A DNA stretch of 64,000 nucleotides from Heteronotia binoei (GCF_032191835.1 NC_083235.1:15872001-15936000); one strand, 5' to 3'; shown: positions 2,447 through 41,939, counted from the stretch's first letter. The notes: a model not told the origin generated them from the sequence alone. Translations and numbers: made by a program.

Positions 2447-2792
2447 AGAATCTTGAGAGTCCCTTGGACTGCAAGAAGACCAAATCAGTCATTCCAAAGG
2501 GAGATCAACCCTGACTGTTCCCTGGAAGGTCAGATGCTGAAGCTGAAGTTCATATACTTCAACTACCAAATGAGAAGGGAGGACTCACTGGAGAAGTTCC
2601 TGATGCTAGGAAAGACGGAAGGCAAAAGAAGAAGGGGATGGCAAAATATGAGATGACTGGACAGTGTTACTGATGTAACTAACACAAATTTGAGCAGACT
2701 TTGGAGGATGGTGGAAGACAGGAGGGCCTGGCGTGACTTTGTCCATGGGGTCGCAAAGAGTCGGACTCAACTGTGTGACTGTACAACAACAC
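2447..2792 (+). mobile_element. BovB (RTE clade) LINE 3' fragment
   Basis: Typical BovB 3' region (gagagtcccttggactgcaag...gaaggcaaaagaagaagggg...catggggtcgcaaagagtcggac) with (CAA)n tail; translation LRVPWTARRPNQS...MLKLK...EDSLEK.LMLGKTEGKRRRG. Confidence 0.85.
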
Positions 2793-2868
2793 ATTTTTGT
2801 TTTCAGAACTTGCGCTTGAGAAAACACTGTCCCAAGAGCGATACACCCACTGATAACTCTTCAACTCA

Positions 2869-3065
2869 TTTCCCATCATATTCCCAGAGGCAAAGACAGA
2901 ACCTAATTAGAGGCTTTTTTATTAATGAGCAGCAAGGAGAGATGTTTGCTTGGAGGTGCCTCTATGTCTGGTCCTGAGAAACTCCCAACTGATGGGTATT
3001 GCCTCTCTCTGGGGAATGTTCCCAGATAAAGTCCTAGAGTTTCCATGCTAAATACTCCAGATATG
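2869..3065 (+). promoter_or_regulatory. Candidate OR promoter module, copy 1 (paralog of 17030-17230)
   Basis: Non-repeat sequence alignable to 17030-17230; TTCCCAGAGG (2881-2890), CTAATTAG (2903-2910), TTAATGA (2922-2928), TCTCTGGGGA (3006-3015); donor-like CAG|GTAGGA at 3141. Confidence 0.55.
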
Positions 3066-3410
3066 CTGAGGCCACTGCCTTTTCATGAGCCAAGATGGTG
3101 GAATTGAGATTGGTGAGCATGGGAGCTCTAAACTGAACAGGTAGGAATCAAAAGAGGACTGGAAGAAAGATGGTGACCTGTAACACTTCTCCAGATGAGA
3201 ATGTTTCCCACTTTTCCTTTGTACAGATTCTTACAAAACATATGTGAATGATTCAACTGTTAGATCCTGAGGATTCTTGGAGAAAAATTGCAGTTCCCTA
3301 CCCTCCTTGTATATAAGGGCTAGTCTGTCCCCTTAGGTTTCAAAAATGCTTCCAGAAGTTAAAAGTAAGGAAAACAGACCCCGGAGACAAGTTAGGAGAT
3401 GTTCAATATG

Positions 3411-3850
3411 TTATCGAAGGCTTTCATGGCCGGAACCCATTAGCTGTTGTAGATTCTCCAGGCTGTGTGGCCTTGGTCTTGGTCCAAGACAGGGGTGGCC
3501 AAACTTGCTTAACACAAGAGTCGCATAGAATAAACACCAGATGTTTGAGGGCCACAAGACATGAACATCAGATGTTTGAGAGCTGCAAGACAGGGAAGGA
3601 AGGAAATAGATGGAGAGAGGGAGGGAGAGATGGAAAGAAAGCAACTTTAAATGCATTCTCCAAGCCGCCTCCCAGCTGGGCTTCAGGAAGTGATTTAAAG
3701 TCACAAATGCCTTCTCTAAGCTGGCTGATGGGGTGTTGGGGGTTTTAGGAGCCGCACAATATGTGTAAAAGAGCCACACGTGGCTTCTGCGCCACAGCTT
3801 GGCCACCCCTGGTCCAAGACCACAGCCACACAGCCCAGAAAATCTACAAC
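3411..3850. mobile_element. Penelope-like (Poseidon-type) terminal inverted remnant interrupted by a hAT MITE
   Basis: tatcgaaggctttcatggccgg...tgttgtagattctccaggctgtgtggc is inverted against gccacacagcccagaaaatctacaaca; resembles lizard Penelope termini. Confidence 0.55.
3490..3811. mobile_element. hAT MITE (CAGGGGTGGCCAAAC family)
   Basis: TIRs CAGGGGTGGCC/GGCCACCCCTG; perfect 8-bp TSD gtccaaga (3482-3489, 3812-3819). Confidence 0.9.
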
Positions 3851-4107
3851 AACCAATTAGGAGATGTTCGTTTGCTTCTTTTCATCTCAGGGTGGATGGT
3901 GATGGTGAAAAGTGACATCAAATTCCAATTAACTTATGGTGAGTGACCCTGTAGGGTTTTCAAGGCAAGAGGTGAACAGGGTGGTTTTCCATTGCCTTCT
4001 TCTGCATAGCAACCAAGGGACTGGATAAATATATGGAGCAGAGGTCCAACAGTGGCTATTAACCTCATCACAGAGTAGCTATTAGCCACAAACTATAGAT
4101 GGAACCT

Positions 4108-4400
4108 TATCACTGATTTCACAGTAGCAGTTGCTCTGCCCTTAAGCTTCTGGTTTCCCTGGCTCAACCAATCGATTCCCCAACAGTTGCTGTGCGACCA
4201 CGCTTTGACCCACATCTCCCTACAATTTCCCCAACATCTTCCTAATCTTGGTTTTTTTAGAGATCAGGAAGATATGGGGGAAATTCGAAGGAGACACAGG
4301 TCAAAATGTGGCCACGTAGCAACTGGTGGGGACTCGATCAGTTGATCTGGGGAAAACAGAATTCTGAGGGCAGAGCGACTGCCACTGCAGAATCAGTCAT
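4108..4400. mobile_element. Old fully palindromic MITE (Harbinger-like lineage)
   Basis: Arms of ~140 bp are reverse complements with many mismatches (cagtagcagttgctctgccc... vs ...gggcagagcgactgccactg); terminus actgatt(t/c) resembles the 28-kb element; TSD not resolved. Confidence 0.65.
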
Positions 4401-5875
4401 AGTCTGGGGCAGTGATGCTCTGTATTCTTGGTGTTTGGGGGCAACAGGAGTGGGGGCTTCTGGAGTTCTAGTCCCACTGATGGACCTCCTGATGACACCT
4501 GTGTTTTGGCCACTGTGTGATACAGTGTTGGACTGGATGGGCCCCTGGCCTCATCCAACATGGCTTCTCTTGTGTTCTTATGACTTCCTTGGTGGTCTCC
4601 CATCTGAATACGAACCTGGGTTGACTCTGATTAGCTTCCGAGATCTGACAGCATTGGGCTAGCCTGGGCCACCCAGGTCAGGGTATTTTAGGATCAGGAA
4701 GCCATAAAAGCAAGAGCTGAGAGGGATCTGACTTTTTCAAGTGCTTTATTACAAACTCCAAGGAATTTATAATAAGCTTGCCCTGTCCAAAATGGTCCAG
4801 CTATACTGCTAGACATGAAGTAAATATTGGGAGTTAACTAATTAGTTAGTCCAGTATCCCATCTCAAACATAGCAGATTGCATCTTGGGTACATGCAGTG
4901 GAAGCCCTTTGCCCTCCATGTGCTGGCAGAGTTACAAAGTTACACAGAGCTGCTTTTCAGTTTCAAGACTAACAATAGTTCTTTTATCTGGAAACTACAT
5001 TCTAGATGGTGAACAACGTTCCCTCTTAGCTGCAGAGTCTTGTGAGCAAAAATTCTACTTTGTGAGCTACTGGCAAAGTTGTGAGCTCCTGCATAAATTA
5101 TTGTGCTCTGGGGTCAGCCTTCCTGAGCGAAGACAAAAATGTGTGAGCTAGAGGCTAAAAATCTGTGAGCTAGCTCACCCTAACTCAGCTTAGAGGGAAC
5201 ACTGATAGTGAAGCTACCTTGGATGGGTCCAGATTTAGGGAGACATCCAGTCTCCATTGTAACAAAAAGAGAGAAGCATTCTGTGTTGTGTGTGCATGAG
5301 TGAAGGCAGTGTGAGAGGGCAGAACAGAAGGAAGGAAGGCAATTTCCCTGTAATCTATCAGTTTACATCAAAGGGACAGAGACGGGAGAATACGCAGGAA
5401 GAAAAACCACAAGTTGCTGGTCTATCTCACCCTTGGAGGCTGAGGCTTGAGAGAGTATCTGGGCTTTCCAACAGTAAGTTCATTTTACTTCAGCATTATA
5501 AAGAATAGGGTGGGCCAGTAAATGGAAACCATCAATCTTGCATAGAAAAGATGTTTTAGCAGAAGTCTCTTTCTCTCTCCCATGGAGATATCTAGTTCTC
5601 ATGGATCTCATTCATAAGATTTAAGACTGTGTCTGCCTTTTCTCTTATAGTAAGCACTAAACAACCAAGGCATATGTCCAAATATGATATATAACCCAAA
5701 TCAATCAAAACAAATATGTGAATGCATCAGAACACATGAAGGTGGCTTATCATACTTATCATCCGACTCTTGGTCTCTCAGGGCCAGTCTTATCTACTCA
5801 GACTTGCAGTGGTTCTCCAGGGTCTCATGCAGAGGTCTTCCATGTCACCTACTGCCAGGTCCTCTTAACTGGAGA

Positions 5876-6199
5876 TGGTGGGAGGATCACGCAATTAGCA
5901 CACCAACTTGATTCCCTATAATTCTGATGACAGAAAAGAACACAGGCTTCTCACACCCGTGTGTAACCACATCCTTGTTCCCTGGACAAATTTATCCCAG
6001 ACGAATGCTAGCTTGCATTAATCCTTGTAAACGCCGCTGCCTTGTGTTGGGCAGATGTTTCCTGTTATGCTTTAAGTGTGGGTGACTTCAGTGTACTTTC
6101 AGCATGTATAAAATAAAGGAACCTGGCTCAGAAGGCAGGCTTTTTCTCCCCTGAGCAGGCTTTTTCTCCCAATACACGTGTCGAGTGATCATCCCTACA
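5876..6199. mobile_element. Solo LTR (324 bp)
   Basis: TG...CA ends, terminal inverted similarity TGGTGGGAGGATCAC/GTGATCATCCCTACA, perfect 5-bp TSD GGAGA (5871-5875, 6200-6204), internal TATAAAATAAAG. Confidence 0.75.
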
Positions 6200-6233
6200 G
6201 GAGATGCCGGGGATTGAACTTGGATCTTCTATT

Positions 6234-7589
6234 CAGGGGTGTCAAAAATAGAATCATAGAATCGTAGAGTTGGAAGGGACCTCCAGGGTCATCTAGTCCA
6301 ACCCCCTGCACAATGCAGGAAACTCACAAATACCTTCCTCTAAATTCACAGGATCTTCATTGCTGTCAGATGGCCATCTAGCCTCTGTTGAAAAACCTCC
6401 AAGGAAGGAGAGCTCACCACCTCCCAAGGAAGCCTGTTCCACTGAGGAACCGCTCTAACAATCAGGAAGTTCTTCCTAATGTTGAGCCGGAAACTCTTTT
6501 GATTTATTTTCAACCCGTTGATTCTGGTCCTACCTCTGGGGCCACAGAAAACAATTCCACACCATCCTTCAAGTACTTTTTTTTTTTTATCCTTCAAGTA
6601 CTTAAGAACATAAGAACATAAGAGAAGCCATGTTGGATCAGGCCAACGGCCCATCAAGTCCAACACTCTGTGTCACACAGTGGCAAAAAATTTTATATAC
6701 ACACATACACTGTGGCTAATAGCCACTGATGGACCTGTGCTCCATATTTTTATCTAAACCCCTCTTGAAGGTGGCTATACTTGTGGCCACCACCACCTCC
6801 TGTGGCAGTGAATTCCACATGTTAATCATCCTTTGGGTGAAGAAGTACTTCCTTTTATCCATTTTAACCTGTCTGCTCAGCAATTTCATCGAATGCCCAC
6901 GAGTTCTTGTATTGTGAGAAAGGGAGAAAAGTACTTCTTTCTCTACTTTCTCCATCCCATGCATTATCTTGTAAACCTCTATCATGTCACCCCGCAGTCG
7001 ACGTTTCTCCAAGCTAAAGAGTCCCAAGCGTTTCAACCTTTCTTCATAGGGAAAGTGCTCCAGCCCTTTAATCATTCTACTTGAAGAAGTATATGTGGCC
7101 CGGGGGCTGAATCAGGCCCCAGGAGGGCTCCAATCAGGCCTCCAAGCAACTGGCTCTTGTCTGCTTCCTTCTCCCCCTCGCTTGCTTCCTTCTGCATCTC
7201 AGCTCGCTTTGCAAGGCTTGCTCAATCACATAGGATCTACTGAGCAAAACCTTGATTTTCTCCATTGGTTGAGGCTCCTCTCCCTTCTGGTCCCCTGGGG
7301 AAGGAAGGAAAGAGCCTGAGCTTCCTTTGCCCAGTTCCCGGGGTCCCATGGGAGAGATACAAAGAAAGCACCTTTAAAACCAACAAGTGCTAATGTTTTC
7401 AGCATGTTTTAAGATTTTTAAAAAAAATCTTTAGTCATGTTTGTCTGCATCCTTTAAAAAGTTTATATCTCTGCTACCTAATCTTAAATAGGTACACACA
7501 TGGGCCAGCCCGACATAGTCTGGCCTGGCCCAACAAGGTCTCATTTATGTCAGATCCGTCCCTCATAACAAATGAGTTCAACATCCCTG
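6234..7589. mobile_element. hAT MITE (CAGGGGTGTCAAA family) interrupted by nested CR1 fragments
   Basis: Starts CAGGGGTGTCAAA at 6234, resumes at ~7092 and ends ...AACATCCCTG at 7589; colinear with the complete copy 45123-45742. Confidence 0.8.
6248..7088 (-). mobile_element. Two nested CR1 LINE 3' fragments (different subfamilies)
   Basis: CR1-A with (ATTCTATG)n tail at 6248-~6600, resuming ~7079; CR1-B with (TTCTTATG)n tail at 6604-7078. Minus-strand ORF2 C-termini ...YEERLKRLGLFSLEKRRLRGDMIEVYKI... and ...[16 protein letters not shown].... Confidence 0.85.
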
Positions 7590-9539
7590 TTCTACATACC
7601 AAGCAGATGCTTTACCACGTCCAAACTGTTAGTGATATCTAAGCACACTCACAGCTTCTTTGGCGGTACTTAATCTGTAGAGTAAAAGTGTAGATACTGA
7701 ACATCTATTGCAGCACTCAAGGAGAACATTTTTTTTTTTTTTGCAGTGAACAGAATTGCCTATTGTTCAGATAAAACCAAGAGCTACAAGTAAAGTTTAT
7801 GAATGAATTAATTCAGCTGTGTTGTATACTATCTAATTTCTTGGTTGAAGGGGGTATTTGATATATTTTCACTCCTTTGAGACTTAAATCTTCAGATCCA
7901 CAAAATTGTTTCCATAGGTTGCAGTGTCATAAAAGAAACACACTGGCTTGTGTTACAAAAGTGGGAATGAAGGCCTTGCAGTAGGAGAGGAAAAGAAGCA
8001 AGATGGGGGCATTATGATCCTGTTGCGCATCTAGTCTAGGCTTCCCAACCCCCCCAGTCCCAACAGGGGAACCCCTGGTTTCCCAGGATCCAACCTGCCC
8101 CCAGTCAGCTGTCTGGTGGGGGAAGGCCTGCCCCTGCAGCCTCCACGTGTCTTGAGATCTCTCCAGGTTTAGAAGCCTGCAAACACCTTTTTAAAAAGTG
8201 TGTGTGTGCCTTTAAATTTAAGCAGGAAGTGAAAACTGCATTGGGAAGGGCCAGCAGCAGAACCCTGTAAAAGAGAGAAAGTGAAGCCCAGTCCCTGCTT
8301 GCTTTCGCTTTGTATAGGAACCAGAGCCAGTAAGTGTGTGTGTGTGAATGAGAGAGAGCAGTAGCACAGTCTCTGTGCTTGTCTTTTGGATTCATTTCAG
8401 TCTTCTTTTATAGTAATCTGTTTTATGGGATGGAGGAAAACGCCATCTCTCTGTCTTTTCAATTGCCTGTATGAAGTTGGTTGGAAATACAGCTGCTCTT
8501 GTGCATACAGCCCCAGTGAGATCACGAAATTGTGTGCTTGCAAACAAACTCTGTTTATTTTGGCTGCTTTGTTAGTGTGGGTTCACTTTCATCTACTGGA
8601 ATTACAACACCTGTTGGGGACGAGGAAATGAAGACTATCCAGGGAAATTGCACTGTGGTGTTTTTATTTATTTTAGGGAATGGGAAAGTCTCCTGGCTCC
8701 ACTCTCCAAGTCCCCAAGTATTTTCTGAGTTGGATTTGGCAACCCTAATCTAGGTAGTCCAGAATTGCAGGCAGACTAATCCACAGAGTTTATCTCATAC
8801 TACCTGACAATAAGAACAAAGGGAGGTTTTCTCCTTCTGGGAAATTTCAGTGAAGGCATGAGCCCTGCTACCTTTTCTCCAAGTTATATAGCATATAAAT
8901 TTTTCCAGGGCTTTTTTGGTAAGAAAAAGCCCAGCAGGAACTCATTAGCATATTAGGCCAAACCCCTTGATGGCACCATTGTTTAACATAGGGCTTTTTG
9001 TCGAAAAAGGAATTCATTAGCATATTAGGCCACACCCCCTGACACCAAGACAGCCGGAACTGCATTCCTGTGTGTCCCTGGATTTTTCCTTTTCCCAGAC
9101 TAGTATTGGGGCTGGCAGAGCTTTTTTTGTAGCAGGGACTCCTTTACACATTAGGCCAGACACCCCTGATGTAGCTAATCCTCGTGGAGATTACAGTAGG
9201 CCCTGTACTAAGAGCCCTAAAAGCTCTTGGAGAATTGACTACATTGGTGTGTGTGTGGCCTAATATGCAAAGGAGCTCCTACTGCAAAAAAAGCCCTGGG
9301 AACTGGGTACAAATAACAACCTATTCTAGATAATGCAAAGATGGTCTTTAGATAAAGATGTAATAATGTAAGATGTAATACATCAGGGATGTGTGGCCTA
9401 ATATGCAAAAGAGTTCCTGCTACAAAAAAAAAAAGGATTTTCCTTTTTCCAGACTAGCATCGGGACTGGGTACAAATCATAACCTATTCTAGATGAGCCA
9501 AAGATAGGCTTTAAATAAAGTAAAGATATAATCATCCCC

Positions 9540-9552
9540 CCTCTCACCACAG
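9540..9552 (+). other. Probable splice acceptor upstream of OR1L-like CDS
   Basis: Pyrimidine tract cccccctctcaccacAG ending at 9552, 66 nt before the ATG; vertebrate ORs typically have spliced non-coding 5' exons. Confidence 0.5.
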
Positions 9553-9618
9553 GTGCATGAAGACCAGAGGTCTCTACATGGAAGTCCTGGTGCCTTAATG
9601 CAAAAGATTTCTTAACTC

Positions 9619-10545
9619 ATGATTGCACAGAACCAAACAACTGAGTTCGTTCTGCTGGGTATCTCTGACAAGCCACAGCTGCAGACACCCCTCTTTGTCC
9701 TCTTCCTGACCATGTACGTTGTGACGGTAACAGGGAACCTTCTCACTGTGGCAGCCATCCAATCGGACCACCACCTCATCCATACTCCCATGTACTTCTT
9801 CCTCAGTTGTCTGTCCTCGGTGGATGTCGGCTTTACCTCAGTAATTGTTCCCACAATGCTACTGAGCTTAGGCCAAGGAGGGACCATTTCTTACACAGGT
9901 TGTCTTACCCAAATGTACTTCTTTTTGGCCTTGGGGAACACTGATAGCTACCTGTTGGCGGCCATGGCCATCGACCGCTACATGGCCATCTGTAACCCTC
10001 TCCATTATGCCACAGTTATGAGCCCTCGATTATGCTTCCTGCTGTTGGCAGGGTCTTGCTTGGTCTCCCATCTCCACTCCCTCCTGCAGACAATGCTTGT
10101 CTCTTATCTAACCTTCTGTGCTTCCAACAGGATCCCCCATTTCTTCTGTGACATCCAGCCCTTACTGAAACTCTCTTGTTCCGACACCAGCATCAACGAA
10201 CTGGTGGGCATGACTGAAGCTTTGGCCGTCATCATGACCCCCTTCCTGACAATCACGATCTCTTATATCCGCATCCTCATGACCGTGTTGAGGGTACCTT
10301 CAGTCTCAGGAAAGCTCAAGGCGTTCTCCACCTGTGGATCTCACCTGACCGTAGTTACCCTCTTCTATGGGAGCATCGTTTGGGTGTATTTCCGGCCTTT
10401 GTCTGGTTACACGGCTGTCAAGGACAGGGTTGCTGCTGTCATGTACACAGTTATCACCCCGATGCTGAATCCTTTCATCTACAGCCTGAGAAACAGAGAC
10501 ATGCACAATGCGCTCAAGAAAGTGGTAGGGAGAAGAAGAAATTAG
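9619..10545 (+). CDS. OR1L-like: Olfactory receptor, class II, family 1 (OR1L-like), intact 308 aa
   Basis: 7TM OR motifs: N-glycan site [81 protein letters not shown] and [12 protein letters not shown] closely match recalled mammalian OR1L sequences. Confidence 0.95.
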   Translation: MIAQNQTTEFVLLGISDKPQLQTPLFVLFLTMYVVTVTGNLLTVAAIQSDHHLIHTPMYFFLSCLSSVDVGFTSVIVPTMLLSLGQGGTISYTGCLTQMYFFLALGNTDSYLLAAMAIDRYMAICNPLHYATVMSPRLCFLLLAGSCLVSHLHSLLQTMLVSYLTFCASNRIPHFFCDIQPLLKLSCSDTSINELVGMTEALAVIMTPFLTITISYIRILMTVLRVPSVSGKLKAFSTCGSHLTVVTLFYGSIVWVYFRPLSGYTAVKDRVAAVMYTVITPMLNPFIYSLRNRDMHNALKKVVGRRRN

Positions 10546-11899
10546 GACAGGGATATGAGACTGGGGAGATATTAACTGGTGAAGGAATGGAAGAACCTGA
10601 AAAGCTTATTCATAGTTCATCAGAGAACACTAGCATGACCCTCCTAATTATCTGGTTTCAAAGCTGGGATACCCCCACATCAGAAGCTATGCAGCTAGAA
10701 CTGCCAACCTCCAAGTGGGGCGTGGAGACCTCCAGATTTCAGAGAACATAGAATCACAGAGGTGGAAGGTATCTCCAGGGACGTCTATGTTAGAAGAACA
10801 GACTGGCAGTGGCTCTTGCTCAGTCCTCCAAGACTACAAACACCATAGAGCAAGCTAGATAGATAAGTTGATAATAGGGTTGCCAAGTCCAATTCAAGAA
10901 ATATCTGGGGACTTTGGGGGTGGAGCCAGGAGGCATTGGAGGTGAAGCCGGGAGCAATTGACAAGTGCGATTGAACTCCAAAGGGAGTTCTGGCCATCAC
11001 ATTTAAAGAGACCACACACCTTTTAAATTCCTTCCCTCCACTGGAAATAATGGGTAGGGACACCTTATTTGGGGACTCATAGAACTGGACTCCCTGGTCC
11101 AATCTTTTTGAAACTTGGGGGATGTTTTGAGGAGAGGCACTGGACACTATACTGAAGCTTTGGTGCCTCTATCTCAAACAACATCCCCCACTTTTCCAGA
11201 AAGAGTGGCAAAATGGCATCCAACTCCAGCTAACAGGATATGATTGAGAAACAATATGGAGTACACCCAACATGAAATCAAAAATTTACATTGTAAGGCT
11301 GCAATCATTGAAGCTTCTTTGGGGGTGGTATTTTTCACCACTTACTATGCACTCTATTGATCATCCTCACAACAATGTTGCAAAAACTTATTTATTATTA
11401 GCTAATTAATTAAGGGGAGATTGTGGGATTTAGAGTTTAAATTGATTGGTTAACTATTAGAATTGGCAGATATGGATAAAATTAAGGGGAAATAGATTGG
11501 CAAGGGCGGAGAGGGTTGGGAACTAAACATCTGTAGGGTGGTGAGCTGCATTTTCACAACTGGTTTGAGGCTGTGGCAGAGACCAGTGGGGGGATGACCG
11601 GCCTGAGGATTCCAGTACTCCTGGGGAGGGGAACAGACATTGCTATAAGGGAAGGCGACTGAGACATGGAGGTGCTCGGCCCCCTTTCAGTCTGTGTCCC
11701 ATCCCGACAGTGGCAAGTAGAGAGGTCAGATTGAATTATTCACCTCCATCATTGGTGTTATACAATGCCAGGTCCATAAATAATAAGACCTCAGTTCTCC
11801 AAGAGTTTTTGCTTGAGCAGGACATGGACCTGGCTTGCGTGACTGAGACCCGGGTGTGAGACGGAGAGTCTGTAGCTTTCTTCCAAATGGCTCCCCTGG

Positions 11900-14800
11900 G
11901 ATACTCAATCTTCCACCAATCACCGACTAGCGGGTGGGGGGGGGAATGGCCCTATTCATACGAGAGGCTTACTCCTTTCGGGCTCTCCCAGACCCAGAGA
12001 TCAATGGTATTGAATGTGCCAGTCTGGCATAGGACATTGGGGAGGGGTTGGCGATATGGCTGGTGTTCCGTCCGCCTAATGCACCAGCCAGCACCTTACC
12101 ATCCCTGATGGAGGCCGTAGCAGGCTGAGCATTGGAGTACCCAAGGCTAGTGATCCTGGGTGACTTCAATGTCCATGCTGATGATACAACCTCCAGCCAA
12201 GCGATGGACCTAGTGTCATCCATGGCGACACTGGGGCTCTCCCAATTTGTTACATTGCCCACCCACCAGGCGGGGCACATGTTAGACTTGATCTTCACGG
12301 CAGGGGTTTTGGTGGATGATATTATTGCTAAAGCAGTGCCATGGTCGGCCCACCTCGCTCTTAAGGCTCGTGTGGTTGTCCCACTCCAAGCCTTTTTAGG
12401 CGACAAGCATATTTTGGCTAGCTCGCAGAGCCTGATGGACCCAGAGAAGTTCCAAAGGACTCTACGGGATCCCTTGCCCCCTGGCAATTCTCTTGATGAC
12501 CTGGTTGAGTCTTGGAATGGCCGGCTCTCCAGAGCCATCAATGAGATCGCACCTTGGTGCCCTCGGCGCCCTCGGATTAAGCTGGCGCAGTGGAATTGTG
12601 GCAGCTGAAACGAGGGCTCAGACGGCTAGAGAGGCAATGGTGGCATTGTTGAGACGAACATCTTATAGAGAGTTTATGAGATCCTATGAGATGGCAGCAC
12701 CTGGAATTGTGGCAGCTGAAACGAGGGCTCAGACGGCTAGAGAGGCAATGGTGGCATTGTTGAGACGAACATCTTATAGAGAGTTTATGAGATCCTATGA
12801 GATGGCAGTCAAAGCCACAAAGAAAACTTTCTTTGCGGCCAAGATTGTGTCTGCAAATTCGCCTGACACAATTGTTTAGGACAATTAGGACTCTCACAGC
12901 ACTGCCGCAAGGCAGGCCAAATGCTTGGGAATTGGAGATAGGCTGTGAGGATTTTGCGAAATTTTTTGCAGATAAAATCTCGTCACTCCGTCGTGACCTC
13001 CCCACCACATTGGAGACAGTATGTGAACTCGAGGCTCCATGCCTATCTTCAGGACCAGTTCTGGATTGCTTCGGCATGCTCAGTCTGAAGGCAGTTGACA
13101 GAATCTTCCTCACTGTACACCCAACAACGTGATTTGGACCCTTGCCCTTCCTGGCTAATTAAAGCTTGCCAGAGGGAGCTTAGATGTCCTATACGGGACA
13201 TTGTAAATAGATCCCTCTCGGAGGGGCTTTTTCCAACGCCTCTTAAAGAGGCTGTGATCCATTCCATCTTGAAAAAAGTTACATCAGATCCACCCAAATT
13301 GGCAAATTACTGGCCGGTCTTGAATTTACCCTTTTTGGGTAAAATTATTGAGAGGACAGTGGCGCTACAGTTACAGGGGTTTCTGGATGATGCTTCCATT
13401 CTAGACACCCACCAATCTGGCTTTTGGTCAGGTCATGGGACGGAGACAGTGCTGGTCACCCTAGTGGATGACCTCCAGGGGCATCTGGATTGAGGTGGCT
13501 TGGCGGTGCTGATGTTGTTAGACCTAGCGGCTGCGTTCAATACGGTCGACCATTGGCTACTGACCCGCCGCCTTGCCGACACGGGCATTTAGGGGTCAGC
13601 CTTGCAATGGCTTTCCTCTTGTCCTTCTTTCGAGGACAAAGGGTGGCAATTGAGGGAGACCTGTCCCAGAGGCACCCGCTTAATTGTGGGGTGCCACAGG
13701 GGGCGGTGCTCTCCTCGATGTTTTTCAACATCTACACATGCCCCCTTACCCAGATTTCCTGGGGGTATGGTTTGGGTTGTCACCAATATGCTGATGACAC
13801 CCAACTTTATCTACTAATGGATGGATGACCTGACTGTGTCCCAGAAAATCTAGATCTGGCACTGCAGGCTGTGGTGCGGTGGCTCAGGCTGAGTAGGTTG
13901 AAGATGAATCCAGTGAAGACTGAGGTCCTTTGCCTGAGTCGGGGCGATCTGGGAAGGGAAATCCCCCTACCAGCGTTTGACGGTGCATCATTGAAAATGG
14001 CGCACAAGGTCAAGAGCTTGGGGGTGCTACTGGAGCCTGCCCTGTCAATGGAGGCCCAGATAGCAGCCACTGCTAAATCCACTTTTTTTTCCATCTTAGG
14101 CGGGTGAAGCAGTTGGTCACCTTCCTGGACCACAACGACCTGGCAATAGTGATCCATGCATCGATCACCTCGAGGTTGGACTACTGTAATGCCCTCTACA
14201 TGGGGCTGCCATCAGCTATTGCAGATCGCAGTGGCCGGGCTGTTATTGGGGCTCCCTAGATGGGAGCACATACAGGTCAGGCTGCAGGAACTGCACTGGC
14301 TGCCAATAGTGTACCAGATTTGTTACAGGGTGCTGGTTATTACCTTTAAAGCCCTATATGGCCAAGGACCTGCCTACCTTAGGGACTGTCTCTCCCCAAA
14401 TATCCCCCAAAGGGTGCTGCGATCTGGTTCGCAAAATCTATTGGTAATCCCGAAGCCGAGGGAGGCCATACTGAAAGTCACCAGAGAAAGGGCCTTCTTG
14501 ATTGTACCCCCCCCAATGGTGGAACCAATTGTTAGAGTGTCAAGCTATGTGAATCTTTCTTTCTTGTACTAATCTGATGCTAATGAAATATTGCAATTGA
14601 ATGTATCTGTAAAGCTTCACGAATGCTACTAACCAAAGCCAAGATGGGCACATCAAAGCAGGGAATATTTAGGGGGTAGTTTGCTCCTCTCACTTTTACT
14701 AACAAATGCAGGAATTTGCCCTTTGAAGATAAAGCACCTCCAGGGAAGGTTCCTCGGCCTGACCCCAAGGAAGGAAACCACAAAGAGATAAGGGAATGCC

Positions 14801-15265
14801 GTGTGAATCTTCACACGGGAATGTAGCATTGTTTAGAGAATGTACTTTTGTTTAGAAAACGCTTTGATGTGTCACCTTAAGTAATGCCTTTCACTGTTAC
14901 TGTGTATCAGTTCCAATCTTCAGCTCAGCTCTGGACTATTGAATAAATCATACTTTGTTTCAAATCAAAGACTGGTTACTTTGAGATCCAATAGCTTGAC
15001 ATTGAGGAGGTGTGGGCCTTGCAGAGCCTTGCCCAGTTCTGCAGGGCCTGAAAGACTACTCTTTTCCAGCTGGCCTATACTTAAGAAGGAATCCATTGTA
15101 GAAGGAATACCATTGCCACGGAAAAACTGTATAACATCAAGATTTAGCTCCAAACTAATTTAGTTGGTTTTAATGTTTGATTTGCAATATATGATTTAAT
15201 GTATGATTTATAATATGCATGTATGATCTGCTTTGGCGGGGAGGGCAGGATATAAATTAAATAAT
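11900..15265 (+). mobile_element. Degraded L2-clade LINE (APE endonuclease + reverse transcriptase)
   Basis: EN motifs ILGDFNVHAD and GHMLDLIF; RT motifs GVPQGAVLS and YADDTQLY; many stops and frameshifts; L2-type 3' end continues after the LTR at ~15002-15265. 5' boundary uncertain. Confidence 0.85.
14538..15001 (+). mobile_element. Solo LTR (464 bp) inserted in the L2 3' region
   Basis: 10-bp terminal inverted repeat TGTCAAGCTA/TAGCTTGACA, 5-bp TSD tagag/ttgag, AATAAA at 14942-14947; host L2 is colinear across it. Confidence 0.8.
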
Positions 15266-15437
15266 ATTAGTATAAAAACTGTGGTCAAGTGGCAAATTTC
15301 TTGCACAATTGGTGGGGATGTCCTGTTATTAAATTCTTTTGGTTGCAGGTATTAACAGCAATCGGAGAAATACTCTCAGTAGAGATTCCTCTCACAACAG
15401 AAGCATTTTTTCTTGACTTTTGGGCACCACGCACATT

Positions 15438-15738
15438 AAGGTAAAAGTAGTCCCCTGTGCAAGGACCAGTTGTTTTCGACTCTGGGGTGACGTTGCTTTC
15501 ACAGCATTTTCACAGCAGACTTTTTACGGGGTGGTTTGCCGTTGCCTTCCCCAGTCATCTACACTCCCCACCCCCCAGCAAGCTGGGTACTCATTTTACT
15601 GACCTCAGAAGGGTGGAAAGCTGAGTCAACCTCGTGCCGGCCGCCTGAACCCAGCTTCAGCCAGGATCGAACTCAGGTCATGAGCAAAGCTTAGGACTGC
15701 AGTACTGCAGCTTTACCGCTCTGCGCCACAGGGCTCTT
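15438..15738 (-). mobile_element. Sauria SINE
   Basis: tRNA-related head (gagccc.gtggcgcagag.ggtaaagctgcagtactgcagtcc), BovB-like 3' part, ACCTTT-type tail on minus strand. Confidence 0.85.
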
Positions 15739-15989
15739 CTACCATGCACATTAGACTCTCACAAAAAAGAGATCACTCTGATCCTAGTTTCCATAGCTAA
15801 GACTTGCTGCTAAGTGGAAAGCTAAAAATGCTTCCACAATTCAGTCCTGGTGTATTAAAATCTGGGACTGCTTCATACAAAGTAAACTAACCTTTTCCCT
15901 TAATTACTCTTCGCCACATGTGTATGAAAAAACAATAGTTCAACCTTGGTTTCCTGTTATTTCGTATTTAATGGATAATGGATTTAATG

Positions 15990-16260
15990 CCGACATAGGA
16001 GTCCAGAGGATTGCCTTGCAGTGGTTTTCCTCCTTTCTCCGTGGTCAGGGACAAAGGGTGGCCCTTGGTGAGCAGACCTCTTTGTGATACCCACTAGAGT
16101 GTGGTGTACCGCAAGGAGCTATTCTCTCACCAATGATATTTACCATCTATGTGTGCCCCCTTGCCCAGATTGCTCGAGGTTTTGGGCTGGGCTGTCACCA
16201 ATACGCGGATGACACCCAGCTCTATCTGTTGATGGATGGCCGCCTACTTTGCCAACTCCC
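15990..16260 (+). mobile_element. L2 LINE RT fragment
   Basis: GVPQGAILSPMIFTIY...CHQYADDTQLY, homologous to 13690-13820. Confidence 0.8.
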
Positions 16261-16269
16261 ATGCGCCGG

Positions 16270-17027
16270 CCCTGGATGGGAGACTGTCCTTGAAATACCC
16301 AATCAGGAGGACGAAGCAGGCTTTCAGCCACCTCTCTGAATATCCTCCAGGCCTCCAGTAGGGGTCAGTCACATCAAAACACAGAAATTCCAAGAGAGAG
16401 AGAGAAAAGTTATCAAAGACAACGCAGGCTAAGTTTCAATCAGCTGGCCTCGAGATGTGCGCATGAACAGAGAAGCTTAGCCAAAACTTGAGACCAAGTG
16501 CGTAACTAAAAGTAGACATCTTATACCCCTTAAAAAGCTGGTTGTGAGTGATTAATCAAGGCTAGGTATCCCAAACACTTGGATGAGCCAAGCCATCTTG
16601 CACCTGGCATCCGGTGGCAGGGGGGCACAGTCAACAACCATCTTCCTTATCTTCACACCCCTTCCAACCCTCCCAGCAATTAACACAGAACAATGGTCAC
16701 ATTCAACAGCCAGTTTCGTTATAACTTCCCTTCCAGGAAGCCCCACCAAACAATGGGCACATCCACAAACCAATTGCCCTCTCAACACCCCTCCTCCAGC
16801 CTAGAAATAGCAGCTCTCCAGCAGCCCTGGCCTCACTCAATGCACAGCAGCCAAGAAGGTCAGAGCGCCTGCTCTGGCTGCAACGCCACTGAGGATGTTC
16901 TCCGCAGCTGAGAACAAAACGTCTGGAAGAAAAACTTTCTCCAGTAGAACACGGCACTTGAGCCCAAAAGATTCTACAAACCCTAATGATGTTGCCAGTC
17001 GTGAAAACCTGAAATCTTTCTAATAAT
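16270..17027 (+). mobile_element. Penelope-like element 3' end (pseudo-LTR region)
   Basis: Terminal signature ...acggcacttgagcccaaaagattctacaaaccc...gccagtcgtgaaaacctgaaatc plus an embedded hammerhead motif; 5' boundary uncertain. Confidence 0.6.
16886..16926 (+). ncRNA. Minimal type I hammerhead ribozyme relic (one core mutation)
   Basis: CCA-CTGAGGA-T-GTTCTC(CGCAGCT)GAGAAC-[A]AAAC-GTC-TGG: stem I CCA/TGG, CUGANGA box, perfect 6-bp stem II, palindromic ACGT stem III, GUC site. GAAA is now AAAA at 16916, a CpG-type change. Confidence 0.7.
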
Positions 17028-17029
17028 AC

Positions 17030-17230
17030 TTTTCCATCACATTCCCAGAGGAAAAGGAAGAACCTTATTAGCTGTCTTAGTATTATTCTGAAGTCAGGGG
17101 AGAGACACTTCCTTGGCTTCATCTCAGAGTCCTCCCTCTCCCCCAAAGGAGATTACCTCAGCCTGATCTCTAGGGCATGTTCCCAAAATAAAGCCCAAGA
17201 GTTTCCCAGGTCCTTAAATATCCTAAACGC
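17030..17230 (+). promoter_or_regulatory. Candidate OR promoter module, copy 2 (paralog of 2869-3065)
   Basis: TTCCCAGAGG (17042-17051), CTTATTAG, TCTCTAGGGC (17167-17176) followed by ATGTTCCCA as in copy 1; donor-like GTAAGT at 17552 and AAG|GTAAGG at 17604. Confidence 0.55.
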
Positions 17231-19100
17231 ATCAAGGTTTCGGGCATACACTGCTCCTGATTTCAACCCAAATCTCTCCAGTCCAATAGCACTCTCTCAC
17301 GCTGGCTCTCAAAATGACTTTCCTCTCATTGAATTATTTCCCTATGCAGCAAAGAACCTCTGGTTAAGAATCTGAAGTCTCACAGGCATCTTTATGGTAA
17401 AAGCTGGAAGAGAAGACTCGATAACGACAGGGCAATTCAACATATGGAAGAACTAGAATATGAATGAGGGAAGCTATTCCTGCTTCCCTTCACCTTATCT
17501 TCCCGCAGCCCATTGTTTGAAGTTATTTTCTCGCACCCGGAAGCCGGTACAGTAAGTCAGCCCAGCTGAGAGAGAAATTCTTAACACGCTGGCTAAAAGC
17601 AAGGTAAGGCACATGAGAACATAACAAGAGCCCTGATGGATCGGACCAGGCCCGTAGCTACAGGGGGGCCCGGGGGTCAGGCCTATCCTTTCAATCCCCC
17701 CTTCCAACTGTAGGGCCCATCCATTGGAGGGCCCCCAATCTGACCTTTTCGTTCACCCCCTCTCTGAACAGGTAGTAGCATTGCTGCTGGCCTCTTCACT
17801 TTCTTCTCTCTTTCCTAACACATCATGCAGAGCAAAAGGGGGGTGGGCTGAGTTAGCTTGTGAAACTCAAGGCAGCTTACAGTGCCGAGAGCCCAGGGCA
17901 ACCAAATAACAAATCCTGCTGTGGGCCCCACCAAACATGAAATCCTGGCTACGGCCCTGTTTTGAAATGAATTCACAGGATAGCCTCTTGCTTGGAATCT
18001 GAACATTTTCCTCCGCCTCATGGATGACCACCCAAAACCCACCTGGAAATGGGAGGTTATCTTTTTTTCAATAAATTAGTTTGCTCTGGAGGCATTTCTC
18101 ATGAGTCATGAAAAATCGCTCAGCTAAACCCTCCAGCAGTGCTGCTTTAAATAACTTTCGGCACGCTCCATGTCACCACCCGCCAAAATTAGAGCTGACC
18201 AACCAGGCTGGCCTCCCCAGATTACGAAGAGAGAGCCCTCCCCTGCCTGCGCAGCAATCCGGCCCCTTCAGGTGAGTCTTTGGCCGCATTTGTGAGCTAC
18301 TGCATAAATTAGTTTGTTCTGGGGGCATTTCTCATGCTCCAAGACAAAAGTGTGTGAGCTGGAGGCTAGAAAACTGTGAGCGAGCTCACACTCAGCTTAG
18401 AGTGAACACTGCATGCCAGCATTGAAACTTTTCAGTGCGAGAGATCCAACCAGCCCAAGCAGGCCTCACTCGCCTGGGGCTCTCCTGGGCCACTCCCCCC
18501 CCCTAGTCAAAAGGCCAGCAAGTAGGCAATTGCCTAGGGTGCCAGCCTTCTGGGGGTGCCAAATCGGATGCCCCCCCCCCACATGACTCAGTGAAGGAGG
18601 TCTCCCATCCAAATACGTGCCAGATTTGGCTGAGCTTAGCTTCTGAGATCTGTCAAGATCAGACTTGCCTGGGCTGCCCAGGTCAGGGAGCAATTTCAAG
18701 TTCTGTGCTTTTCGTTTTCCCCACAATTCATGATCATTAGTTTATGATCGTTAGTTATCAGTGCCAGGGGGAGGCAGAAATTAACCTTGCCTGGGGTGCC
18801 AGATAATCTAGGGCCAGCCCTGAGCACATGTGCCAAAAAAAAAAACCACCCAGAAAAATTAATCTTCAATGTGAGGGTGAACTGACAGAAGTCTGTTGGG
18901 GGGGGGAGGAGACAAAAAAAATGCAAGTGTGAACTGACTGCACCAATCGCAACAACACCCATAGAAACCCAAAAGGTAGCTGCAGTCCAGAAAATGCCTT
19001 TGCATGATTAGATACCCCCCCTCCCCAAGAATTTCTTTTAAAGTGTTCATGTGACCCATTAGTAAGGCAGGTCTCAGTCGTCAAAAGTTTAGATTATATT

Positions 19101-20610: not shown

Positions 20611-21090
20611 NNNNNNNNNNNNNNNNNNNNNNNNNNNNNNNNNNNNNNNNNNNNNNNNNNNNNNNNNNNNNNNNNNNNNNNNNNNNNNNNNNNNNNNNNN
20701 NNNNNNNNNNNNNNNNNNNNNNNNNNNNNNNNNNNNNNNNNNNNNNNNNNNNNNNNNNNNNNNNNNNNNNNNNNNNNNNNNNNNNNNNNNNNNNNNNNNN
20801 NNNNNNNNNNNNNNNNNNNNNNNNNNNNNNNNNNNNNNNNNNNNNNNNNNNNNNNNNNNNNNNNNNNNNNNNNNNNNNNNNNNNNNNNNNNNNNNNNNNN
20901 NNNNNNNNNNNNNNNNNNNNNNNNNNNNNNNNNNNNNNNNNNNNNNNNNNNNNNNNNNNNNNNNNNNNNNNNNNNNNNNNNNNNNNNNNNNNNNNNNNNN
21001 NNNNNNNNNNNNNNNNNNNNNNNNNNNNNNNNNNNNNNNNNNNNNNNNNNNNNNNNNNNNNNNNNNNNNNNNNNNNNNNNNNNNNNNNNN
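20611..21090. other. Assembly gap (480 N)
   Basis: Run of N. Confidence 1.
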
Positions 21091-21227
21091 AACAAATGGC
21101 TATGTGTTCAAATTACAAACTATCATTTATATGGCAAAGATGTGCCTTTAACTGCACTCACTTTCACTCCAGATACACGGCAGATGACAGGGCCCTACTG
21201 TGAGGAAAATGCCGTTTAACTCTGCCT

Positions 21228-22176
21228 ATGGATACGAAGAATCAAACCACAGAGTTCATCCTGCTGGGCATCTCTGACCGGCCAGAGCTGCGGACCCCCC
21301 TCTTTTGTGTCTTCCTGGACCATGTACGTTCTGACGGTGACAGGGAACCTCCTCACAGTCATCGCCATCCAGTCAGAATGCCCAACTCGTGCACAACCCC
21401 CATGTACTTCTTCCTCAGCTGCCTCTCTATGGTGGATGTGTGCTTCACCTCAATCATCATTCCCACGATGCTGCTGAGTCTACTGAATACACAGGGCCAA
21501 GGCGGGGACCATTTCTTACACTGGTTTGTCTTACTCAGATGTACTTCTTTTTGGCCTTGGGGAACACAGATAGTTACCTCTTGGGAGCCATGGCCATCGA
21601 CCGCTACGTGGCCATCTGCGACCCTCTCCATTATGCCAAAGTTATGAACCAACGGCTATGTTTACTACTCTTCACGGTGGTCTTGCCTCATCTCCCATCT
21701 CCCACTCCATTCTCCAGACCATCGCTCACTTCCTTCCTTATCTTCTGTGGCTCCAACAGGATCCCCCCATTTCTTCTGCGACCTCCAACCCTTTGCTGAA
21801 GCTCTCTTGCTCTGACACGAGCACTCAGGAACTGCTGGCAATGACTGAAACCTTAGCTGTCATCATGACCCCCTTCCATGTGTATTGTAGTCTCTTATGC
21901 CCGCATCCTTGTGACCGTGCTGAGGGTGCCTTCAGCCAAAGGAAAGCGCAAGGCATTCTCTACTTGTGGGTCTCACCTGACAGTAGTCAGCCTCTTCTAT
22001 GGGGCATTACCTGGGTTTACTTCCGCCCCTTATCCCAGCTACGCAGCGTCAAAGACAGAGTGGCTGCCCTCATGTACACAGTGATCACCCCAATGCTGAA
22101 CCCTTTCATCTATAGCCTGAGAAATAGAGACATGCAAAATGCCCTCAAGAAAGTGGTGGGACGAAAGATGAATTAG
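21228..22176 (+). pseudogene. OR1L-like: OR1L-like olfactory receptor, frameshifted as assembled (possibly an intact gene with sequencing errors)
   Basis: Close paralog of 9619-10545 from MDTKNQTTEFILLG to [28 protein letters not shown]; about 10 single-base indels; no substitution-derived stop seen in the corrected frame. Confidence 0.9.
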
Positions 22177-25362: not shown

Positions 25363-26503
25363 ATGTTACAAAACTACTGTATTTTCTATAAACCATCTAT
25401 GACAAATAGTATCAGTGTTCAATAATTACAGGAACCTTATCCACACTGTAACAATGGAGCGTAAAATAATGATTCTCATATGTGTAGCCAGAGAATATAA
25501 CCCCCTATGTAGTCCCATTTCAAACCAATGTTCTTTATCAAGGGCTTTGTAAATTTGTTAGTCCTTTATCTCTTGTCCCACTGACTCAAGAAGACTGCAT
25601 TGCTGTTGGATCACATTGAACTGTGTTGCTCCATTGTCTAATTTTTATTTATATATTTGATTTGATTTTTAGCCCACCCTTCCCGTAGGACAGCCTCAGG
25701 GCGGGTTACATCATAAAAACAATCAACAGCAAAACCCCCCAAAAAACAATAAAAGACCAATTTAAAATATATAAAATCTAAAACTACAGAGTGACAATAG
25801 AGACTAAAATGGCAGGTTCTGCCTCACAGATGTGGCCTTCCTATTGTCCAGGTCCAGCAGATCTTATAGCACTGGGATGGAATGAAGGGGGGAGGCCGGT
25901 AATGAGTGACATCCATAGCTGAAAGCCTGGCGAAAGAGCTCTGTTTTATAGGCCCTGCCTATAATCTCCTTCAGTATAAGTAAATTAATTTTCTCTGATA
26001 ACTATGGGGTAAACAACTGTAGCACTCATTACATGGCAGAATGCTGTGGCAGAACAGTTTCCCGATAAGCTTCCTCTGGCCTTGGCATGTGCCAGGATTT
26101 TGATTAAATCACAAGTTTTCTTGCTGATTGTGAGTACTTTTGCATAGCTGTGGGCTCATATTAGTTCTTCCATTCATTACTGCTTGCATAAGGTATTTCT
26201 TTTATCTTTGACAGTTAGTTAAAGCAGAAGAATGAGATTTATTGCCTTTAATTAAGATTAACATGTTAAATTTGGCCTTCATGCCATGCCTGAAAAGATA
26301 ATAAGTATATAGCAGAAGTATCTTATCTGACTTAGAACTAGGGTTGCCAGGTCCAATTCAAGAAATATCTGGGGACTCTGGGGTTGGAGCCTGGAGACTT
26401 TGGGGGTGGATCCAGGAGACATTGGGGGTGCAGCCACGAGCAAGGTTGTGACAAGCATAATTGAACTCCAAAGGGAGTTCTGGTCATCACATTGAAAGGG
26501 ACT

Positions 26504-26564
26504 AGATTCAGATGGGCAACCGTGTTGGACTGAAGCAGTAGAACAAAGGTGCTACTTGACTCTG
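26504..26564. mobile_element. 61-bp Penelope-terminus-like micro-insertion
   Basis: 14-bp TSD cattgaaagggact (26490-26503, 26565-26578); insert resembles reptile Penelope termini (gatgggcaaccgtgttgg...agcagtagaacaaa). Confidence 0.5.
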
Positions 26565-26649
26565 CATTGAAAGGGACTGCACACCTTTTAAACATCTTCC
26601 CTCCATTGGAAATAATGAGGGAGAGGGGCACCTTCTTTTGGGGCTCTAG

Positions 26650-27105
26650 AACCAACAGGTTGAAATTAAATCAGAAGAGTTTTTGGCGAAACATTAGGAA
26701 GAACTTCCTGACGGTTAGAGTGGTTCCTCAGTGGAACAGGCTTCCTCAGGAGGTGGTGGGCTCTCCTTCCTTGGAGGTTTTGAAACAGAGGCTAGATGGC
26801 CACCTGACAGCAATGCTGATTCTGTGAACTTAGGCAGATCGTGGGAAGCAGGGCAAGAAGGGTTGCATCAGTGCTTAGTTCTCACGGCTCTTTCATACAT
26901 GTCCAGGGAAATGTTGATCGCTACTTTGGGACCAGACAGCATTTTCCCTCCAGGCCAGCTTTGCCGGGGATCCTGGAGGGATCTTCAGGGCATGGAACGG
27001 GTGTCACTGGGAGTGTTGAGGGGAGGTATTTGTGAATTTCCTGCACTGTTCAGGGGATTGGACTAGATGGCCCTGGAGGTCCCTTCCAACTCTATAATCC
27101 TATGT
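26650..27105 (+). mobile_element. CR1 LINE 3' end
   Basis: ...[38 protein letters not shown]... followed by CR1 3' UTR and ATTCTATG-like tail. Confidence 0.85.
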
Positions 27106-29972: not shown

Positions 29973-30908
29973 ATGGAGAAAGAAAACAGGACCATGGTTT
30001 CTGAATTCATACTCCTTAGCATCTCATCCAGGCAGGACTGGAACAGGCTATTATTCCCTTTCTTTTTGACCATGTACGTCGTCATAGTACTGGGAAATCT
30101 CACTATTGTCTTGGCCATAAGGATGGATGGTCAACTCCTCCACATCCCAATGTACTTCTTCCTCAGTAACCTTTCCGTGGTGGACATCTGCTTCACAACA
30201 GCCACTGTGCCCAAACTGTTGGCTAATATGCTCTCTGAAGTGAGGAGGATCTCCTATGGTGGATGTTTGGCCCAGATGTACTTTTTTGTCGCCTTTGGCA
30301 TCACCGACAGCTTCCTCTTGGCATCCATGGCAATGGACCGTTACGTGGCCATCTGTCACCCACTGCACTATGCCACCATGATGAGCAACCAGATCTGCCT
30401 CCTGCTAGTGGCTGCCTCCTGGTTGGTTTCTCACCTCCACTCTCTCCTCCACACCATCCTGATGTCCCGTCTCTCTTTTTGTGCTACCAAGCAAATATCC
30501 CACTTCTTCTGCGATGTCTTCCCGCTGCTGAAGATCTCTTGCTCCAACACACACTTGAATGCTTTGGTGGTGCATACAGAAGGAGCTTTAGTGGTCAACA
30601 GTGCTCTCGTGGTCATTGTCCTCTCCTATGTCCGTATTCTGGTGGTCATCCTGAGGATTCCTTCTGCTAAGGGAAAGCAAAAGGCCTTCTCCACTTGTGG
30701 GTCCCACTTGACGGTGGTAGCCTTATTCTACGGCACCGTCATCTGGGTCTACTTCCAGCCTTCGTCCAGCTTCTCTGCTGAGAAGGACACTCTGGCTGCC
30801 ATTATGTACACTATGGTCACACCTATGCTGAATCCCTTCATCTACACTCTGAGGAATGACAAGATGAAGAAGGCCTTGAGGAGGCTTTTTGGCCAGAAGA
30901 TAAACTAA
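29973..30908 (+). CDS. OR1Q1-like: Olfactory receptor, class II, family 1 (OR1Q-like), intact 311 aa
   Basis: Motifs [49 protein letters not shown]; LLKISCSNTHLNALVVHTEGALVV resembles recalled mammalian OR1Q1; acceptor-like ctctgtctctgcacAG at 29959. Confidence 0.95.
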   Translation: MEKENRTMVSEFILLSISSRQDWNRLLFPFFLTMYVVIVLGNLTIVLAIRMDGQLLHIPMYFFLSNLSVVDICFTTATVPKLLANMLSEVRRISYGGCLAQMYFFVAFGITDSFLLASMAMDRYVAICHPLHYATMMSNQICLLLVAASWLVSHLHSLLHTILMSRLSFCATKQISHFFCDVFPLLKISCSNTHLNALVVHTEGALVVNSALVVIVLSYVRILVVILRIPSAKGKQKAFSTCGSHLTVVALFYGTVIWVYFQPSSSFSAEKDTLAAIMYTMVTPMLNPFIYTLRNDKMKKALRRLFGQKIN

Positions 30909-41467: not shown

Positions 41468-41939
41468 TAAAATGTTTTATTAATTTGGAAGCTGCCTCAG
41501 ACAGGTTTCTGGAGGGGTGGCATGAAAATGTTCTCTCTCTCTCATGGCCTGACCACTTGATATGTAGTTGTGAGTGTTGGCAGTAGGGTTGCCAAGTCCA
41601 ATTCAAGAAATATCTGGGGACTTTGGGGGTGGAGCCAGGAGCACAGTTGTGACAAGCATCATTGAACTCCAAAGGGAGTTCTGACTATCACATTTAAAGG
41701 GATTGAACACCTTTCAAATGCCTCCCCTTTTTAAAAAATAATGAAGGATAGGGGCACCTTCTTTGGGGCCTCATAGAATTGAACCCCCTGGTCCAAACTT
41801 TTTGTAACTTTGGGGGTATTTTGGAGAGAGGCACTGGATGCTATGCTGCAAATTTGGTGCCTGTACCTCAAAAAACAGCCACCTGAGCCCCAGATACTCA
41901 CAGATCAATTCTCTATTATACCCAATGCATTGCTGTGGA

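Follow-up and report, generated by a model that had tools for sequence, protein, structure and literature searches.

In mouse olfactory receptor (OR) promoters, O/E (EBF) sites are concentrated in the 200 bp before the transcription start with a mean of 1.38 per promoter, homeodomain sites are enriched as well, and TATA-like boxes are enriched at -60 to -10 (PMC3247239). About 300 bp of promoter sequence are enough for OR-like expression, and the promoter of M71 needs both motif classes (PMC12547500). OR enhancers, but not promoters, are marked by a composite motif in which a homeodomain site adjoins an O/E site (PMC12547500, PMC7804114). In V1R genes, promoter homology exists within receptor subfamilies (PMC3247230). 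Here, we present the computational analysis of a stretch of 64,000 nucleotides from the gecko Heteronotia binoei (GCF_032191835.1, NC_083235.1:15872001-15936000), referred to as the window, in which two copies of a sequence module lie upstream of two tandem OR1L-like paralogues (genes A and B). In our view, this module is probably the subfamily-specific proximal promoter of OR1L-like genes, situated ahead of a non-coding first exon.

Self-BLAST of the window aligned two pairs of segments: 2869-2910 with 17030-17071 (block 1; 36 of 42 positions identical, 85.7% over 42 bp, E ~4e-8) and 3006-3044 with 17167-17206 (block 2; 34 of 40 identical, 85% over 40, E ~6e-6). Both pairs are collinear with one common offset of 14161, and no third copy was found by this search in the 64-kb window. 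In the ~95 bp separating the blocks, the copies share ~45% identity (alignment A3). Their homology thus consists of two footprints in a unit of ~215 bp rather than of a uniform 200-bp match. An earlier, sequence-only reading of the window had aligned 2869-3065 with 17030-17230 over ~200 bp; the strings which it quoted were located where it had placed them in both segments and the homology stands, although the match is not uniform. Detected with the nhmmer profile described below, copy A covers 2856-3072 on the plus strand (E=2.4e-54; alignments A2 and A3) and is taken to be the proximal promoter of gene A, which is OR1L-like and intact. Copy B covers 17018-17239 on the same strand (E=2e-58), with block 1 at 17030-17071, block 2 at 17167-17206 and a TATA-like TTAAATA at 17214-17220. 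From block 1 to the ATG, the distance is 6750 bp in gene A (ATG at 9619) and 4198 bp in gene B (ATG at 21228). The distances of 6.7 kb and 4.2 kb reported earlier are therefore correct for the sequence as assembled, the second span crossing a gap of 480 N at 20611-21090. The same reading had called the second locus an OR1L paralogue without noting that its reading frame is broken: 21228-22176 carries frameshifts and is a pseudogene.

Loci of the closest proteins were taken with 10-kb flanks from Eublepharis (L001, L007, L008), Paroedura picta (L002), Sphaerodactylus townsendi (L003), the skink Tiliqua scincoides (L004) and Hemicordylus capensis (L005), with ~150 kb of distinct sequence coming from the four other module-bearing lizards. 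BLAST found the module upstream of OR1L-like genes in Eublepharis, Paroedura, Sphaerodactylus and Tiliqua, so that the alignment to other squamates proposed earlier as a check gave a positive result. A nhmmer profile was built on the aligned module core and run over the window and the fetched loci; it detected 12 distinct copies with E-values from 1e-36 to 1e-66 in the window and the ~150 kb, representing five squamate genomes. Outside the window, copies lie on the OR strand in Eublepharis (L001 6300-6498; L007 7573-7787, 9932-10149 and 20212-20431), Paroedura (L002 10152-10370 and 14819-15036), Sphaerodactylus (L003 4573-4797) and Tiliqua (L004 8340-8546 and 16303-16515). An OR promoter is expected to occur once per gene, to have the orientation of the gene and to be separated by an intron from the coding exon downstream. 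With one exception, the set conforms to this: 12/12 copies are in sense orientation and 11/12 sit 1.3-6.7 kb upstream of an OR1L-like coding exon. The exception is the Eublepharis copy L007 7573-7787 (the same as L001 15489-15703), which has no coding exon of its own. It lies 2.4 kb upstream of the copy preceding the B-type gene, the interval being free of OR coding sequence, and could represent a solo promoter, an alternative promoter or the relic of a lost gene. The profile gave no hit upstream of the three other ORs of the window, nor in the 10 kb upstream of the gene in the Hemicordylus locus. Within the window and the ~150 kb from related loci, the earlier description of the module as non-repeat holds, every copy there being associated with genes and in sense.

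The best match of copy A is the module that precedes the gene orthologous to gene A in Eublepharis (76% over 391 bp), and copy B is matched best by the copies of the B-type genes of Paroedura and Sphaerodactylus (77% and 67% over ~410 bp). OR1L-like proteins group in the same way as the modules, A-type copies going with A-type genes and B-type copies with B-type genes. This pairing across geckos indicates that the module was duplicated together with the gene before the gecko families split. Judging from the copies aligned, the module was already present in the common ancestor of geckos and skinks.

In the orthologue comparison, the 6.7-kb intron of gene A has a unique backbone that is collinear with that of Eublepharis at 72-76% identity and broken by lineage-specific insertions. 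Because the intron backbone also aligns between orthologues, the informative comparison is the one between paralogues. Nine intact genes and their modules were used for the constraint test, with the fourfold-degenerate sites of the same genes as reference. Identity between lineages was 0.49-0.69 at these sites and 0.72-0.88 in block 1 of the matching modules, with lower block 1 values just in two copies with small deletions. It amounted to 0.55-0.78 in block 2 with the TATA-like box, 0.39-0.60 in the spacer and 0.11-0.5 in the sequence following the core. Among the nine copies, 17 of the 42 columns of block 1 are invariant (40%) versus 13 of 76 fourfold-degenerate sites (17%; Fisher p=0.006), and the proportion is 5/107 downstream of the core. 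The similarity between paralogues begins ~25 bp before block 1 and stops ~10 bp past TTAAATA. Block 1 is conserved beyond fourfold-degenerate sites. Gene conversion was considered as a source of this similarity and rejected, since within-species paralogues are no closer (copy A versus copy B in this genome, 0.83) than cross-species paralogues (copy A versus B-type copies of other species, 0.81-0.86).

In copy A, block 1 (2869-2910, plus strand) contains the O/E-like site ATTCCCAGAGG at 2880-2890 and the homeodomain-core site CTAATTAG at 2903-2910; the corresponding elements of copy B (block 1 at 17030-17071, plus strand) are TCCCAGAGGA at 17043-17052 and CTTATTAG at 17064-17071. The order of ATTCCCAGAGG, 12 bp and ATTA is characteristic of the block, and the ATTA is invariant in 11/11 aligned copies, so that a TAAT-core homeodomain site stands near the O/E-like site in every one of them. 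A second homeodomain-type site, TATTAATGAGCAG with the core TTAATGA, follows ~10 bp after the ATTA of block 1 (copy A, 2920-2932, plus strand). It is kept in 7/11 copies, whereas the B-lineage copies of the window gecko, Paroedura and Sphaerodactylus no longer have it. Block 2 of copy A (3006-3055, plus strand) comprises the O/E-like site TCTCTGGGGA at 3006-3015, TTCCC, GATAAAG, GTTTCC and a TATA-like TAAATA at 3049-3054. Across copies, TC(T/A)CTGGGG comes first and is succeeded, after a short variable stretch, by TTCCC, ATAAAG and GTTTCC. TTAAATA follows block 2 in 9/9 gecko copies and forms the 3′ edge of the paralogue-conserved core.

The consensus of EBF/COE proteins is TCCCNNGGGA (PMC2394523), and the O/E-like sites (TCCCAGRGGM in block 1, TCWCTGGGG in block 2) deviate from it by 1-2 mismatches, the TCCCA and GGG cores being invariant. 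A single mismatch is present in block 1 of copy B and in block 2 of copy A. Besides these near-matches, the O/E label relies on a perfect ATTCCC half-site. The sequence-only reading had postulated O/E and homeodomain sites and had stressed a palindromic TAATTA. The homeodomain part is borne out by the invariant ATTA core, while the O/E matches are degenerate. TAATTA itself turned out to be private to copy A, where CTAATTAG provides the context of the ATTA; the conserved state is TTATTAG, most other copies having TTATTAG or TTATTAA, and the ATTA core alone is invariant. The Michaloski motif CNTCTGG was considered for block 2 and rejected on reading the alignment, the shorter TCTGG form occurring just in the copies of the window and of Paroedura.

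Exon 1 of gene A is predicted as a non-coding exon at 3075-3140 (plus strand) with an inferred start; it ends in CAG and its intron begins with the GT at 3141. For gene B, the predicted non-coding exon 1 extends over 17245-17603 (plus strand; start likewise proposed) and ends in CAAG before the GT at 17604, with a second candidate donor GT at 17552. All three donor-like GTs had been pointed out earlier and are confirmed. The donor of gene A, CAG/GTAGGAAT (exon end 3140; the slash marks the exon boundary), is identical in the Eublepharis orthologue. The segment 17018-17608 aligns with both Paroedura copies, in which CAAG/GTAAG (exon end 17603) is kept, and skink copies have the donor GCT/GTAAGT at a position similar to that of lineage A. 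Exon 2 of gene A (9553-10545, plus strand) starts after the acceptor AG at 9551-9552 and contains a conserved 5′ untranslated region (5′UTR) and the intact OR1L-like coding sequence of 308 amino acids at 9619-10545. This acceptor, CCACAG/G at 9552/9553, is conserved in Eublepharis along with the following 16 nt. Exon 2 of gene B (21173-22176, plus strand; acceptor AG at 21171-21172) contains the OR1L-like pseudogene with its ATG at 21228 and several frameshifts, and its acceptor CACTCCAG/A at 21172/21173 is kept in 6/7 B/C-type sequences. The exon-2 acceptors precede the ATG by 55-66 nt. Their conservation implies that an exon lies further upstream, and the module is the sole upstream sequence common to the paralogues. 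At the sequence level, the donor and acceptor layout expected of an OR promoter with a non-coding exon is present as predicted splicing. What is observed of the module is its homology, its presence once per gene and in sense, a conservation above the reference sites, and the conserved donor and acceptor that go with it.

Some variation was seen around the acceptors. In the Eublepharis B-type gene, the exon-2 acceptor has been lost by a change from CAG to CAC (L007 ~13775), and a new CAG right before the ATG (L007 13826-13829) is used by the NCBI model. When gecko OR1L-like exons are aligned around the ATG, an AG closes codon 4 before AAYCAAAC (window 9628-9630; L002 11913-11915). The Paroedura gene model splices into this codon-4 AG and replaces the first four residues, and the Gekko "isoform X2" may do likewise.

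From these data, the following mechanism is proposed. The promoter copies would have been duplicated along with their genes before gecko diversification and would since have been held by purifying selection. The core of ~215 bp would combine an O/E (EBF)-like site and ATTA in block 1, the TTAATGA-type site, the O/E-like site of block 2 and the TATA-like TTAAATA, with transcription presumably starting ~25-35 bp past TTAAATA. The resulting non-coding exon 1 (lineage A, ~60 nt; lineage B, up to ~350 nt) would be spliced over a transposon-rich intron of 3.5-6.4 kb to the acceptor 55-66 nt before the ATG. Where transcription starts, which factors bind and whether the module takes part in receptor choice are matters of inference. 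The sequence-only reading had likewise assumed duplicated promoters, one per gene, with conserved blocks marking functional sites. This is partly supported, by the copy per gene, the sense orientation, the constraint on block 1, the end of paralogue similarity at a TATA-like box and the donors and acceptor; the degenerate O/E-like matches and the restriction of TAATTA to copy A limit the support.

Several observations weigh against the module being the proximal promoter. Among public sequencing runs, none contained more than 0.11 of the sampled words of 2700-10600, and the gene ranges obtained for the other species span coding sequence alone. Matches resembling TCCCNNGGGA occur in the window at chance density (31 seen versus 24 expected), and because they are not enriched the O/E label rests on conservation and not on motif score. 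TTAAATA is absent from both skink copies, which have TTTGAAC there. That orthologues align over the module was rejected as proof of constraint, the intron backbone aligning equally well. Gene B being a pseudogene, copy B may possibly be functionless now. Two NCBI gene models with short coding first exons point in the same direction: in the Eublepharis Gnomon model P0004, the ATG falls within the module, in the interval separating block 1 from block 2 (L007 10001-10021; donor at 10021/10022), and the Paroedura model P0005 has an ATG 151 bp upstream of the module (L002 10001-10012). If based on RNA, these models imply a transcription start upstream of block 1.

The module would then lie downstream of the true start, either as part of a longer 5′UTR exon 1 or as an enhancer-like element in intron 1, and the loss of the TATA-like box in the skink is in agreement with such a position. 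We regard this explanation as rather unlikely. The two models are mutually inconsistent and use weak donors (GAC/GTCTCT and AAT/GTTGGG), the Eublepharis donor is missing from the other copies, and the Paroedura model enters the coding exon past its native ATG. Furthermore, paralogues share no invariant column among the 24 that precede block 1, transposon sequence adjoins copy B 12 bp before block 1, and the paralogue-conserved core is closed by no conserved donor. Both models thus carry little weight, and a start upstream of block 1, while the main rival of the proximal promoter, has a rather low probability.

A functionless, neutral remnant of the tandem duplication is very unlikely. Genes A and B are tandem paralogues with coding exons that are 79% identical in the window self-BLAST, and some similarity of their flanks could have survived. 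However, A-type and B-type genes share 0.58-0.63 of their fourfold-degenerate sites, yet 0.81-0.86 of block 1; the rest of the upstream regions of 4-7 kb is unalignable between the paralogues, even just before the ATG, and the footprints persist in the skink copies as well. That the module is an unrecognised interspersed repeat lying by chance near both genes is scarcely credible: the region is rich in transposons, repeats adjoin both copies and one Eublepharis copy (L007 7573-7787) lacks a coding exon, but the dispersed, gene-independent occurrence in both orientations that is typical of repeats was not seen in the window and ~150 kb, where the copies keep to the OR strand and, with this one exception, to OR1L-like exons, are positionally orthologous across gecko families, and differ from the true repeats of the window, which are found in either orientation and at a distance from genes.

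As the probable proximal promoter of OR1L-like genes, the module provides a sequence-defined promoter candidate with predicted exon 1, donor and acceptor for one squamate OR subfamily. To our knowledge, the start sites of squamate OR genes are essentially unannotated. The mammalian-type layout and subfamily-specific promoter homology would accordingly reach lizards and would have lasted for roughly the age of crown squamates. The module is useful in annotation and leaves the understanding of OR regulation unchanged, being an element of the expected kind. A more far-reaching idea concerns block 1, which with its 42 bp has remained almost free of indels since before the gecko-skink split: its O/E-like site, fixed 12-bp spacer and ATTA could be a subfamily-specific "address" that sets when, where or how often OR1L-like genes are chosen in the olfactory neurons of squamates. 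We consider this doubtful. If it were true, the orphan Eublepharis copy would be an extra choice element, and lizards would possess a compact cis-code of receptor choice that is deeply conserved.

The surroundings of the two copies share little. Apart from the module and the coding exons, self-BLAST of the two upstream regions revealed only multi-copy repeats and one inverted match, and the absence of homology in the transposon-rich surroundings noted earlier is thereby confirmed. A multi-copy repeat at 4583-4683 is matched between both upstream regions, and a four-copy repeat of 125-180 bp (5079-5204 versus 18290-18411, 38826-39006 and 41988-42183) is read as transposon copies; 5079-5204 was therefore rejected as a second conserved element. 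The inverted match of 500 bp (7100-7594 versus 22677-22174, 79%) is read as a transposon copy, too. On the proximal side, a lineage-specific SINE-like insertion at 2442-2792 is missing from the Eublepharis orthologue and has left module A intact, ending 75 bp before block 1; the segments 2320-2441 and 2793-3404 on either side are collinear with Eublepharis L001 6111-6820. Transposon sequence at 16760-17017, a lineage-specific insertion as well, adjoins copy B and stops 12 bp before block 1, the module being unbroken. No Rfam family matched window positions 1-22000, including 16886-16926, at the gathering threshold.

The window harbors four intact OR coding exons on the plus strand (9619-10545, 29973-30908, 42397-43320 and 53580-54518), the frameshifted pseudogene of gene B at 21228-22176, and two runs of N (20611-21090 with 480 N, and 54683-54869). 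The protein of gene A (9619-10545) has 90% identity to "olfactory receptor 1L6-like" of Gekko japonicus and 89% to that of Eublepharis macularius, and an exact match is recorded in assembly GCA_032191835.1. For the Gekko japonicus orthologue (P0002), a look-up by identical sequence gave no record. In Eublepharis, a C-terminal OR fragment at L008 13974-14344 lies 3 kb downstream of the C-type gene and shares 83% with positions 815-1185 of the Logan contig L009; it stands at the start of a gene model of 350 amino acids running off the locus. L009 was considered as a spliced transcript and rejected, being genomic. An interspersed repeat family at 10867-11106, 26339-26651, 41560-41800 and 58137-58377, with fragments at 1460-1544 and 8690-8747, carries TAATTGAAC followed directly by TCCAAAGGGA and is missing from the loci of the other species. 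Here, a homeodomain core abuts an O/E-like 10-mer in a layout like that of the mouse Greek-Island composite, inside a transposon. Motif-only calls in OR clusters of this genome should hence be made with caution, given this composite-like motif in a repeat family.

Compared with known systems, the module shares both motif classes with OR enhancers such as the H, P and J elements and the Greek Islands (PMC7804114). In mouse, the extended homeodomain word AACTTTTTAATGA occurs in the H and P elements as well as in the P3 promoter (PMC7804114); its 3′ part corresponds to TTAATGA of the module, the match being confined to 7-8 bases. In contrast to OR enhancers, which are intergenic, number about one per cluster and have the adjacent homeodomain-O/E composite, the module occurs once per gene in fixed orientation, has its O/E-like site separated from the ATTA core by 12 bp, and is followed by a TATA-like box and a donor. 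As block 1 lacks the composite layout of OR enhancers, the module reads as a promoter and not as an enhancer.

With V1R subfamily promoters, the module has in common a block confined to one subfamily, the three other ORs of the window being without a copy. Promoter homology was reportedly also described for OR family 262 by Hoppe et al. in 2003, as cited in PMC3247230. The module also resembles mouse class II OR promoters (such as those of M71/Olfr151 and MOR23), which are likewise small regions, at most a few hundred bp long, just upstream of a non-coding exon 1 (PMC12547500, PMC3247239). Both have TAAT-core homeodomain sites, and the candidate O/E-like sites and TATA-like box of the module would correspond to the one or two O/E sites and the frequent TATA-like box of the mouse promoters; both are without a CpG island, and the coding exon follows kilobases downstream past an intron. 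The module differs from them in being a sequence-defined candidate from squamates, in its degenerate O/E sites, and in a 42-bp block that is near-unchanged between paralogues which split before the gecko-skink divergence. By analogy with these mouse promoters, the module would work like, and most probably is, an OR proximal promoter.

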